Position numbers and translations under genes: made by a program
NCBI RefSeq assembly: GCF_031769215.1
Contig: NW_026782178.1
Location: 124,001 to 188,000, forward strand
DNA: 64,000 bases
Source: Ylistrum balloti
Lineage: Eukaryota
Reading direction: 5' to 3'
Shown here: positions 43,034 to 55,847 of the stretch, piece after piece
Numbering within the stretch: position 1 is the stretch's first letter
How the letters are laid out: each line of letters begins with the position of its first letter
Notes under the pieces: model-generated
Told to the model about the DNA's origin: nothing
The model's database searches: none
The model's input: the letters and a program-made list of their open reading frames with translations, nothing else

Positions 43034-46000
43034 TCATTCTTTCAGTCTTAATAGTTGTCCTGAGGTAGTCTGCACACTGACAAAATAAAATAAAAGTGGG
43101 TAAATATCATCCATTCTTCATAAAATGTGAATGCTGAAAAACATTGTGTTTGAAGGTCTAAGTTTAAAGTAAGCATTTTTAATAACAATTAAAATGCACA
43201 ATTCATATCAATTCCCAACTCGATATAAACTCAAAATATCAAAGGATCAAAGATATTGAGGGAGAAGGTGTACAAACATGCAATCTTCTATTGGTTGTGT
43301 AATAAGAACTTCTATTCCGATGACATTACCAACCTGAAGAAAATGTTCTGAAATATCCCGACTTGATCACCATGCAAATGAAAATAAATACACCATGTAT
43401 TGATACAGGTTGGTTGTAACATTAACTTTTACCTTTGTCAATTCATACCCAAATATAACTGGCACATTCTTTGATTAAAATAAAAAAGGTTTTATAGCAA
43501 AGCTTATGATGAAACAATAGTTGTAATCCATTCAGTGCTTACCAGTGAACTAACTCTCCTCCTATTATATCATGTACGTGGTATATCAAACCCAAGCGAC
43601 AGATCTTTGGCCATTTTCGATGTTCTAGATCCTTTAAAAAAACAACAAACTGTAATAACTTTCATTAATAATAATGAAAACAGGAAATGAACACTTTACA
43701 AAGAGATCAGTTTACTATTACGCTTGTGGCCATTGGGAATTTCAACTGTTTTCACCTCATCATGTATCAGTAAAAAATGATGACATAAGGAAATGCAATA
43801 TTACTCTGTGAAAAAAAGCACTCTCAAAGTGAAGGTAGCTTATTTTCCAGAAATCAGGGTCTTGATATCTGTTAACATATGATGTTAGTCATATCTCAAC
43901 CTAGAAAAACAGAGGGAACTTGTGTGGGTTGTTTGGTAAATCATTTAACAACACAAAACCCGTGTCAATATGATTTCCAAAAGTCACAAGAAATGTCACT
44001 TGTAAACACAGATTTAAATATAACACAAATTGTCAAAGTCAAAAGTTAATTAAATTGCAAACAAGAGATACAAAAACAAAAAAACCAAGAGGGATATGGC
44101 CACCACTATTGCTTGATCTTTACTTTTTCGTTAAAAGTTGGATAATTTACCTTCTTTTCTCTTCTTTCTTTTTGTTCTTACTTATATGAAAGTTCCTTAA
44201 GAAATAATGATATGCCAACTACCAAATCAAAGTTGGCTGCCTCTCAGTCTTTCCGTTTTTCTTATCAATCCAAAAATAAAAAGGGTATAACAATGGACCA
44301 AAGGGAACCTACATATGAAATTTGAGAAAAATCCATCCAGTCCTACATAGGAAATAGCATTTACAAACTTTCATTATTGAAATCCAAGAAGGTTGCCAGA
44401 CAGCCATTTTCTTTTCTAATCATTCCCAAAATCTAAAGGGCAAAACTAAGGATGAATGGGCACATACATATGGAATTTTAGGCAGATCCATCCAGTCCTC
44501 CTTAAGAAACATTAGTACAAGAATTTTTCATGGATGAACAGTTGGACCACTGTTAGAGAGAAATTTGAATAGCTCGCCATCTGATGATGGTTGGCTTTAA
44601 GGCTTATGAAAAATGAACTTGAAATTAAAAACAGTTTTCATTACACATATCACAATAATTTGTATGGGATCTGATTGGAGTAAGTTGTAGTCCAATTCAA
44701 ACTGGTTACTGTGTCATAATGGTGCTAGTTTTGACAGGTTTGTTGATCATAAATGTTCCAGTTTCGACAGGTTACTTTATCATAAGGGGATCTGCTTAGA
44801 TTTTTATCCAGGTTCATTTTAGATTTCTACATCATAAATTTAAGGGGTCTGTTTACATAGGTTTCTAGGTCATAAAAAAATCAGTGAAGATTGTTAGGTC
44901 ATAAAGAGGTCAATATAGACAGACGTCATGTGAATTGCAGAGTATATGTTTCATAATAAGAATTAGTTGGGTGTATGCAAACCTTTCTAAGTATCTCTTT
45001 GTATTTACACTTCCTGATCATGGTAAGGACAGCTTTCCTGCCTCGCAGAAAACACTTCATAAATGTGCCAGCATTTGGAATCGACAACCACCAGTTTCCG
45101 ATATCTTTCACAGTTATCACAGAAGCTTTTAGTAGTTGTCTACAACAGAGGAGACAAAAATTGAACATAGAGAGAACAGTGCCAGCAAACTTTTTTAAAA
45201 TCATATATTTATTTAAATGTTAAACATATGTAAATATATGGCTCATTCAATGCACCAGTTAGTTGTATACTGATGGAAAACTTGCCTATTTGTTATCATT
45301 TTTCATTGCACGTGTATCAAATGTCTCTCTGATTTCCTGACATTAAGGATTTTACTCATCTTATTTTCTATCTCATTTCTAATGAACTGATCTACATAAA
45401 CTGCCTGATATAAAAGTTAATCAATGATCTTTTCTAAAAGTCCTACTGTTACCTACTAAGTAGCAAAATACATTGTAAGTCAAGTTAACTATTCCTGAGT
45501 TAGAAACCATCTCATTCAATGGAAGTTGATGCGGAAAATATATCGGATGGATCGTTTCCATTCATGTGTCTGGAACACCAAACTTTGTCTTCATTTTTCA
45601 GCCCTACACACTTCCAACCTTGTATTTTATTACATGAATAGACAGAAAAATGTGTCAAAAATTGTTGAAATTGAAATTGGATACAATAACTAAACTTTTC
45701 CAATGGCTGTTAATAGTTGAACTTTGTCATATAAGGAAGTTGTACTCACGTTATTTCAAAGTCAGAGAATTTGTAATCCATCATGAGTGTCTCCTTTGTC
45801 ACACAGACATCTTGACATTTTCTGACAACATTAGAACTAAATCTCTCTGAAATTACATAAGCAGAACATATTGGAAAAAATAAGAAGTTCAACTGAAGAA
45901 AACAGAAGTCAAAAAACTGAAAAGTTCACTGAAGCAGCTGTTGTAAATCATTACATACAATGTTGTAAAGATAATAAACGTTGTCAGAAATTAATAATTA

Positions 46001-54600: not shown

Positions 54601-55847
54601 ATCATAGTGTAACATCCTCTCTATTATAGTGTTACACTATCTCTCTCTCATAGTGTTACACCATTTCTATCATAGTGTTACACCCTCTCTATCATAGTGT
54701 TACACACTCTCTATCTATCATAGTGTTACACCCTCTCTATCATAGTGTTACACCCTCTCTATCATAGTGTTACACCCTCTCTATCATAGTGTTACACACT
54801 CTCTATCATAGTGTTACACCCTCTCTATCATAGTGTTACACACTCTCTATCATAGTGTTACACCCTCTCTATCATAGTGTTACACCCTCTCTATCATAGT
54901 GTTACACTCTCTCTATCATAGTGTTACACTCTCTCTATCATAGTGTTATCATAGTGATACATACTCTCTATCATAGTGTTACACTCTCTCTCTCATAGTG
55001 TTACACCATCTGTATTATTGTGTTACATCATAGTGTTACACACTCTCTATCATAGTGTTACACTCTCTCTATCATAGTGTTACACTCTCTCTATCATAGT
55101 GTTACACACTCTATCATAGTGTAACATCCTCTCTATTATAGTGTTACACTCTCTCTATCAAAGTGTTACACCCTCTCTATCAAAGTGTTACACTCTCTCT
55201 ATCATAGTGTTACACCCTCTCTATCATAGTGTAACATCCTCTCTATCATGGTGTTACACCCTCTCTATCAAAGTGTTACACTCTCTATCATAGTGTTACT
55301 CACTCTCTGTCATAGTGTTACGCCCTCTCTGTCATAGTGTTACTCCCTCTCTATTATAATGTTACGCCCTCTCTATCATAGTGTTACACTCTCTCTATCA
55401 TAGTGTTACACGCTCTCAATCATAGTGTTACACCCTCTCTATCATAGTTTTACACCGTCTCCATCATAGTGTTACACCCTCTCTATCATAGTGTTACACC
55501 CTCTCTATCAAAGTGTTACACCCTCTCTATCAAAGTGTTACACCCTCTCTATCAAAGTGTTACACCCTCTCTATCATAGTGTAACACCCTCTCTATCATA
55601 GTGTTATTCCTCTATCATTGATGCCCACCCTTTGTGTTAGACTTCTCTATGTCTGATGTCTGTATTGCTCTCTCTTGTATCGATGTTCTTAACTATCTGT
55701 TTCAGTGTTGTCTATTTACTGGAATGGGAGCCAGGTTGTGATATAAACTGCCAGAGATTGCCTTCTAACTCCAAGTATGCATTTCTACCCGAGTGGTTTA
55801 CTGCTTCTTTGGATATAGAGAATCCAGCTCCTGGACCTACAGATTAG
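48681..55847 (+). CDS. DXO: Decapping and exoribonuclease protein DXO (DOM3Z / Rai1 family); 381 aa, 7 exons
   Basis: Exons 48681-49009, 50216-50442, 50910-51005, 51300-51420, 51785-51920, 52076-52170, 55706-55847; GT/AG, phases consistent, 1146 nt. Motifs FRKPIEIGSFS, DFVCWRGLLTKLL.TP, G.KFEQY, VNTNE.FCSVVRSRL, GEVD, YVEFKT, KL.KWWAQSFL.G, GFRD.DG, W.PNVC.NF, YAFLPEW. Confidence 0.94.
52262..52775. repeat. 57-bp minisatellite, ~9 copies, DXO intron 6
   Basis: actcagtcagg recurs at 52511, 52568, 52625; source of the two 19-aa repeat ORFs at 52403 and 52411. Confidence 0.92.
53721..55620. repeat. 22-bp satellite, ~85 copies, DXO intron 6
   Basis: Unit ctatcatagtgttacaccctct with point variants; ends ~85 nt before the last DXO exon. 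Confidence 0.97.

Follow-up and report, generated by a model that had tools for sequence, protein, structure and literature searches.

A divergent STK19-DXO gene pair in the scallop Ylistrum balloti, most likely held by one short bidirectional promoter since at least the protostome-deuterostome ancestor

This article deals with two divergently oriented genes, the repair gene STK19 (also named WHR1) and DXO (of the DOM3Z/Rai1 family), a gene for the quality control of RNA caps, which stand next to each other in the genome of the scallop Ylistrum balloti (Bivalvia, Pectinidae). Both are located in a stretch of 64,000 nucleotides (nt), positions 124001-188000 of contig C321 (NW_026782178.1) in a genome assembly of 648 Mb; this whole stretch is referred to as the window, and the coordinates below are those of the window unless another contig or locus is named. 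A preliminary description, prepared from the letters of the window, had reported an intact STK19 on the minus strand and an intact DXO on the plus strand of an apparent mollusc, with start codons 951 bp apart. All of these statements proved to be right: the spliced models (267 and 381 amino acids, aa) consist of seven GT-AG exons each, the start codons at 47729 and 48681 are separated by exactly 951 bp, and the outer ends that had been given for the pair, 43034 and 55847, are those of the two stop codons. The window does not contain any N, and independent contigs from a public DNA run span positions 46400-50400. An assembly artefact as the source of the pair could be ruled out by these independent DNA contigs together with the same layout in five other genomes.

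The coding sequence of STK19 extends over 43034-47729 on the minus strand, stop codon included, in exons at 47729-47600, 46782-46637, 46250-46109, 45846-45750, 45139-44983, 43631-43543 and 43076-43034. Exon borders of both genes were placed at frame-compatible GT-AG sites, those of STK19 being chosen against the NCBI protein 'inactive serine/threonine-protein kinase 19-like [Ylistrum balloti]' (P0180). The joined coding sequences were built in scripts for the control of frame and length and for the comparison of STK19 with P0180; the database searches were run with single exons or stored protein identifiers, never with joined spliced proteins. The spliced model is identical to P0180 in 267/267 positions, which also settles the molluscan origin of the window. 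Exon 5 reaches 36.7 bits against the Pfam Stk19 family (PF10494), over the cut-off, and P0180 bears the same domain; in the PDB the human STK19 chains were the sole matches of this exon (E 2.6e-16). A tblastn comparison with STK19 proteins from the oyster and other species likewise marked seven collinear exons, which span residues 9-267 of the oyster sequence, and the seven-exon structure is common to four lophotrochozoans. An in-frame ATG at 47783, upstream of the accepted start, was considered and rejected, because the homologues begin at the methionine of MSRKR, as does the NCBI model, and a predicted splice acceptor lies between the ATGs at 47783 and 47729.

An exhaustive search with the 57 aa of STK19 exon 5 yielded 191 cluster representatives at E <=0.001, and the named members of the family come from vertebrates, insects, a tardigrade, a leech, a tunicate, a chytrid fungus and two ichthyosporeans; STK19 is therefore far older than the vertebrates. 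The family is also known as winged helix repair factor 1 and is marked by three winged-helix domains; the role of the scallop protein in transcription-coupled repair would be that of the human protein, from which it is taken over by analogy.

DXO occupies 48681-55847 on the plus strand, stop codon included, with exons at 48681-49009, 50216-50442, 50910-51005, 51300-51420, 51785-51920, 52076-52170 and 55706-55847. Exons 1-6 match the Pfam RAI1 family (PF08652) with 50.6, 85.2, 18.5, 27.2, 61.3 and 24.5 bits, satisfying the curated cut-off, and they are collinear on the 333 positions of the model (1-67, 73-145, 159-185, 187-224, 226-269 and 273-297, respectively). Exon 7 alone has no Pfam match; it is conserved in the limpet (E 2.6e-9), Lingula, oyster and amphioxus. 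In the PDB, exon 2 found mammalian DXO at E 6e-15 and, farther down, fission-yeast Rai1/Din1 at E 1e-9; exon 4, which is too short with its 39 aa, found nothing there when used alone, and it is matched by Pfam RAI1. The WRG and KFEQY motifs are kept in the alignment to the mammalian DXO chains, and GEVD and EFK (E-x-K) can be read directly in exon 4. Since these four motifs hold what we take, from the mouse DXO structures, to be the catalytic Arg, Glu, Asp, Glu and Lys, the scallop enzyme appears to be active; the activities that mark the family are decapping and 5'-3' exonuclease degradation.

Whether the two genes have further copies was judged by six-frame Pfam searches over the whole genome. 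Stk19 matches were found only at 44983-45099 and 46628-46723 of the window (exons 5 and 2, minus strand), and RAI1 matches only between 48747 and 52168 (five exons, plus strand); both genes are single-copy in the scallop. The orthology that had been assumed at the outset is borne out by these results, since the two genes are the sole members of their families in the genome and their best relatives among solved structures are human STK19 and mammalian DXO.

Some features of the DXO gene deserve separate mention. In the oyster, limpet, Lingula, Lamellibrachia and amphioxus the N-terminus of DXO has about 15-60 extra, mostly basic residues (e.g. MKRS...) in the same exon. In the scallop, the frame is already closed 21 nt before the ATG at 48681, so that the scallop DXO appears to lack such an extension, unless a further exon, so far unseen, is spliced in from upstream at the AG of 48677-48678. 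Intron 6 is 3.5 kb long and consists largely of repeats, namely a 57/113-bp tandem repeat at 52271-52774 and a 22-bp minisatellite of about 86 copies (53720-55606), which with its 1.9 kb makes up most of the intron. Straight after the stop codon, at 55861-55952, there are four perfect copies of a 23-bp repeat.

The 951 bp between the two start codons (47730-48680) form the proposed shared bidirectional promoter. No other conserved coding signal was found in this spacer, and no gene stands between STK19 and DXO. It is the sole CpG-rich stretch at the locus: the observed/expected ratio of CpG is 1.06 at 48000-48499 versus 0.07-0.45 in the flanking gene bodies. In mollusc methylomes such a pattern is expected where two methylated genes of broad expression have an unmethylated promoter between them.

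The neighbourhood of STK19 was surveyed in 12 species (the scallop and 11 other animals), using the STK19 protein as anchor and calling genes within 10 kb on either side. A gene of the RAI1 family was found immediately upstream of STK19 and on the opposite strand in the oyster Magallana gigas, the limpet Patella vulgata, the brachiopod Lingula anatina, the annelid Lamellibrachia satsuma and the amphioxus Branchiostoma lanceolatum. The identity of these DXO genes and their exon order were confirmed by tblastn of the seven scallop DXO exons, which correspond one-to-one and in the same order in the oyster, limpet and Lingula; amphioxus differs by the gain of one intron and the loss of another. 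From ATG to ATG the gap is 951 bp in the scallop, 1065 bp in the oyster, 1503-1593 bp in the limpet, 1327 bp in Lingula, 3636 bp in Lamellibrachia and 718-787 bp in amphioxus. The absence of this adjacency from other lophotrochozoans and from non-vertebrate deuterostomes had been named in advance as what would speak against an ancient pair; the head-to-head arrangement is present in four other lophotrochozoans (oyster, limpet, brachiopod and annelid) and in one non-vertebrate deuterostome, amphioxus.

Outside the pair the genes vary: ECSIT and a Myb/ZZ gene are found in the oyster, Ependymin and PLDc_2 in Lingula, and PLDc_2 in Lamellibrachia. When the open frames of the fetched loci were compared with the window, the sole match beyond the pair was a Lingula ependymin exon (24700-24840, E 2.8e-5). 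Ependymin-related genes stand just past the 3' end of STK19, in convergent orientation, both in the scallop (23216-35880) and in Lingula (L012:15434-17291); they could be the remnant of a larger lophotrochozoan block or a chance coincidence in a family of many copies. Downstream of STK19, a PLDc_2 gene is common to Lingula and Lamellibrachia; among the best genome matches it was absent from the scallop contig.

A common element could be recognized in the spacers themselves. In the scallop an ETS-like site, CCGGAAGT, lies at 48470-48477 on the minus strand and reads towards STK19, and 9 nt downstream of it there is a CCAAT box on the same strand (48456-48460); this module is about 200 bp from the DXO ATG, and the ETS-like site has a counterpart in the spacers of all five other pair species. 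The composite of CGGAAG followed by CCAAT within 5-60 nt, directed towards STK19, occurs once per spacer in 6/6 pair species (24-300 bp from the DXO ATG in the other five), and zero to two times elsewhere in the loci of roughly 25 kb. No ETS-CCAAT composite was found near STK19 in the species without the pair. According to first-order Markov simulations, the chance of the composite is 0.002-0.04 per spacer in the observed orientation and 0.006-0.05 in either orientation.

Additional evidence came from the oyster, where a transcriptome contig (L008) reveals on the M. gigas locus a non-coding first exon of STK19 at 9100-9170. This transcript begins 61 nt beyond the CCAAT box, at a distance of 165 bp from the start codon of DXO; from its first exon an intron of 820 bp leads to an acceptor that precedes the STK19 ATG by 10 nt. 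On the model of the oyster, a splice acceptor (AG after a pyrimidine run) is predicted in the scallop at 47738-47739 on the minus strand, 8 nt upstream of the STK19 ATG, which implies a non-coding first exon farther upstream. The scallop STK19 would therefore carry a short non-coding first exon as in the oyster; a tentative candidate, suggested by the sequence and the oyster geometry, is 48371-48400 on the minus strand, about 60 nt after the CCAAT box and with a GTAAAA donor at 48370. The acceptor and such a short first exon would account for the fact that the in-frame ATG farther upstream (47783) does not serve as start.

The spacer also contains a break (48502-48505) where the contigs of the only public DNA run with this region depart from the reference and continue into a repeat of high copy number. 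The contigs overlap here by 4 bp (TGGG), and each of them runs into 27 letters that are absent from the window; of the two 27-mers one was searched, and at least 462 copies of it occur in the genome, many of them within non-coding tandem arrays with a unit of 1744 bp. The break probably reflects a polymorphic insertion of the repeat between the ETS-CCAAT module and the DXO ATG.

Because the pair has the same orientation in three lophotrochozoan phyla and in Chordata, the comparison assigns it to the protostome-deuterostome ancestor and the breaks to later times; the earlier proposal of a pair kept since the bilaterian ancestor is in agreement with this. For a pre-bilaterian age, two hexacorallian cnidarians are too few to decide. 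A separate origin of the arrangement in lophotrochozoans and chordates would be compatible with the absence of the pair in these two cnidarians and in the sea urchin, and with DXO not being found within 10 kb in three ecdysozoans. Such a history would, however, require that two single-copy genes were joined twice in the same orientation, at similar spacing and with the same ETS-then-CCAAT module in the same direction, whereas one gain followed by a few breaks is simpler, and we regard convergence as very unlikely.

The presence of the ETS-CCAAT composite in all six spacers and of the oyster STK19 exon 165 bp from the DXO start codon points to a bidirectional promoter shared by STK19 and DXO; for the scallop, the transcription starts and the co-expression of the two genes are predictions. 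Few motifs are enriched in human bidirectional promoters; GABPA/ETS and NF-Y sites are among them, and GABP is able to drive transcription in both directions (PMC3082894). It is our conclusion that the divergent pair of single-copy genes, which goes back at least to the protostome-deuterostome ancestor, has most likely been held by one short bidirectional promoter. This conclusion is based on the intact scallop genes, on an orientation and a close spacing that recur in four lophotrochozoan lineages and amphioxus while the genes around the pair vary, and on the CpG-rich spacer with its ETS-CCAAT module and the oyster transcript. According to the proposed mechanism, one compact ETS/NF-Y promoter would serve both genes: ETS/GABP-type and NF-Y factors would bind the sites in the spacer and start transcription in either direction. 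If the genes were separated, at least one promoter would be harmed, so that such breaks would be selected against.

Several points weigh against this conclusion. The pair is dispensable, as it is broken in two cnidarians and in the sea urchin: in Nematostella and Orbicella STK19 has other neighbours, alpha-L-fucosidase among them, and in Strongylocentrotus a different gene stands upstream of STK19, with DXO not within 10 kb. In Nymphon, Tachypleus and Priapulus there was no called upstream gene and no DXO within 10 kb; genes there are long, and DXO may be adjacent at a distance of more than 10 kb. The spacer of 3.6 kb in Lamellibrachia is long for a classical bidirectional promoter, and a short spacer leaves little room for breakpoints, so that a degree of retention is to be expected even without selection. 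Finally, the product of the composite probabilities over the six spacers, about 2e-12, is indicative only and optimistic, since the pattern was picked after viewing the data. With regard to the six loci without the pair (those of Nymphon, Orbicella, Strongylocentrotus, Priapulus, Nematostella and Tachypleus), tblastn of the seven scallop DXO exons gave chance-level matches only; the weak ones in Priapulus carry stop codons, and the Priapulus locus has 8255 N. In both cnidarians an alpha-L-fucosidase gene stands beside STK19, apparently as part of a conserved neighbourhood specific to cnidarians that has taken the place of DXO.

The same observations can be read in terms of an ancestral pair that was kept neutrally, the spacer of about 1 kb being a small target and the ETS and CCAAT elements an ordinary DXO promoter, without shared regulation. 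The repeated loss of the pair fits such a history, as do the Lamellibrachia spacer, which grew while the pair stayed intact, and the position of the composite, which is nearer to the DXO ATG (about 25-300 bp) than to that of STK19. On the other hand, the oyster STK19 transcript starts so close downstream of the CCAAT box that the module, standing between the genes, is in promoter range of both; the orientation of the motifs is identical in all six species, and the flanking genes were reshuffled in every lineage examined, two features with which neutral retention agrees less well. We consider it therefore unlikely, and a pair constrained by its common promoter remains the preferred explanation.

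It could also be supposed that the two proteins need each other, STK19 serving in the repair of stalled RNA polymerase II and DXO in the decay of the resulting aberrant 5' ends. Both act on the products of RNA polymerase II transcription and the pair is very old (PMC6769589), which is circumstantial. Lineages with a broken pair, however, retained STK19, and bidirectional pairs commonly unite unrelated housekeeping genes, so that a coupling at the protein level is highly improbable as the cause of the linkage, and any functional coupling of the STK19 and DXO proteins is speculation. The more far-reaching view, that the pair is a co-regulated module more than 550 million years old and maintained by selection, in which the shared ETS/NF-Y promoter ties the supply of the repair factor to that of the enzyme destroying aberrantly capped RNA polymerase II transcripts, both for one clean-up pathway of failed transcription, appears quite doubtful to us.

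It should be emphasized that these results bear on the origin of a well-known block within the major histocompatibility complex (MHC) in humans. In a 2019 review (PMC6769589), the only treatment of the evolutionary origin of the DXO-STK19 linkage within the literature searched, it was stated that among the four genes of the RNA-surveillance quartet in MHC class III (NELFE-SKIV2L-DXO-STK19, 'NSDK') no linkage between any two predates the vertebrates, and that STK19 belongs mainly to vertebrates. Our survey contradicts both points: STK19 is present across animals, in a chytrid and in ichthyosporeans, and it is paired with DXO in molluscs, a brachiopod, an annelid and amphioxus. It follows from the latter distribution that the pair was not assembled by the evolution of the MHC; an old unit was inherited by the MHC region. 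The new part of the present work is the extension of the known vertebrate pair to invertebrates and back to the protostome-deuterostome ancestor. The adjacency itself is visible in public annotations and may have passed unremarked in large microsynteny tables. For those who study STK19 and DXO a small conserved module, the putative promoter, becomes available for testing; for comparative genomics this is a further well-documented ancient pair, probably constrained by its promoter, useful and unsurprising in kind.

Another member of the human quartet, SKIV2L, had been noted as missing from the window, and it was indeed located elsewhere in the scallop: its Ski2_N and DSHCT exons lie on contig C325 (644540-667308, plus strand). 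A second DSHCT gene, on contig C69, is probably MTREX. No gene of the SKIV2L type was found in the 8 kb past the DXO stop codon, and with SKIV2L on C325 this means that the quartet was not assembled at this locus. A crude regular-expression scan of the 14 kb upstream of the scallop SKIV2L, run without a NELFE probe, revealed no NELFE-like N-terminal or RRM motif. At 59346-60013 of the window, which is locally richer in GC, there are overlapping open frames on both strands. One of them opens with a segment resembling a helix-turn-helix, and the stretch may be what is left of a transposase.

The closest known system is the vertebrate pair of DXO (DOM3Z) and STK19 (RP1/G11), for which the human arrangement was taken from the cited papers and from the PDB chain alignments. 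The human genes are head-to-head, as the preliminary description had stated, and have overlapping 5' ends; the vertebrate arrangement is found in shark, zebrafish, coelacanth, frog and mammals (PMC6769589; PMC7298618). The vertebrate and scallop pairs are alike in their orthologous genes of housekeeping type, their divergent orientation and their very short spacer. The proteins are of comparable size, the scallop STK19 having 267 aa versus 254 aa in the corrected human protein, and DXO having about 380-400 aa and about seven exons in human and other vertebrates as in the scallop. They differ in that the first exon of human STK19 lies inside intron 2 of DXO. Furthermore, in the human block SKIV2L is tail-to-tail with DXO, 59 bp from the DXO 3' end, and the flanks are formed by NELFE (head-to-head with SKIV2L), by C4 and by the RCCX module, whereas the scallop pair has ependymin-related neighbours, SKIV2L on another contig and no MHC context.

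With the bidirectional housekeeping promoters of the GABPA/ETS, NF-Y, NRF1, YY1 and ZNF143 class (PMC3082894) the scallop locus shares the divergent genes, the CpG-rich spacer and the ETS-like and CCAAT elements. This class is defined by a distance of less than 1 kb from transcription start to transcription start, whereas the scallop figure of 951 bp is measured from ATG to ATG and the oyster figure of 165 bp from the transcript 5' end to the DXO ATG. As in the metazoan microsynteny pairs of Irimia et al. 2012 (PMC3514665), a pair is kept across phyla while the surrounding gene order decays. In those blocks the constraint is mostly a developmental enhancer inside a bystander gene; in the STK19-DXO pair it is likely a shared core promoter.

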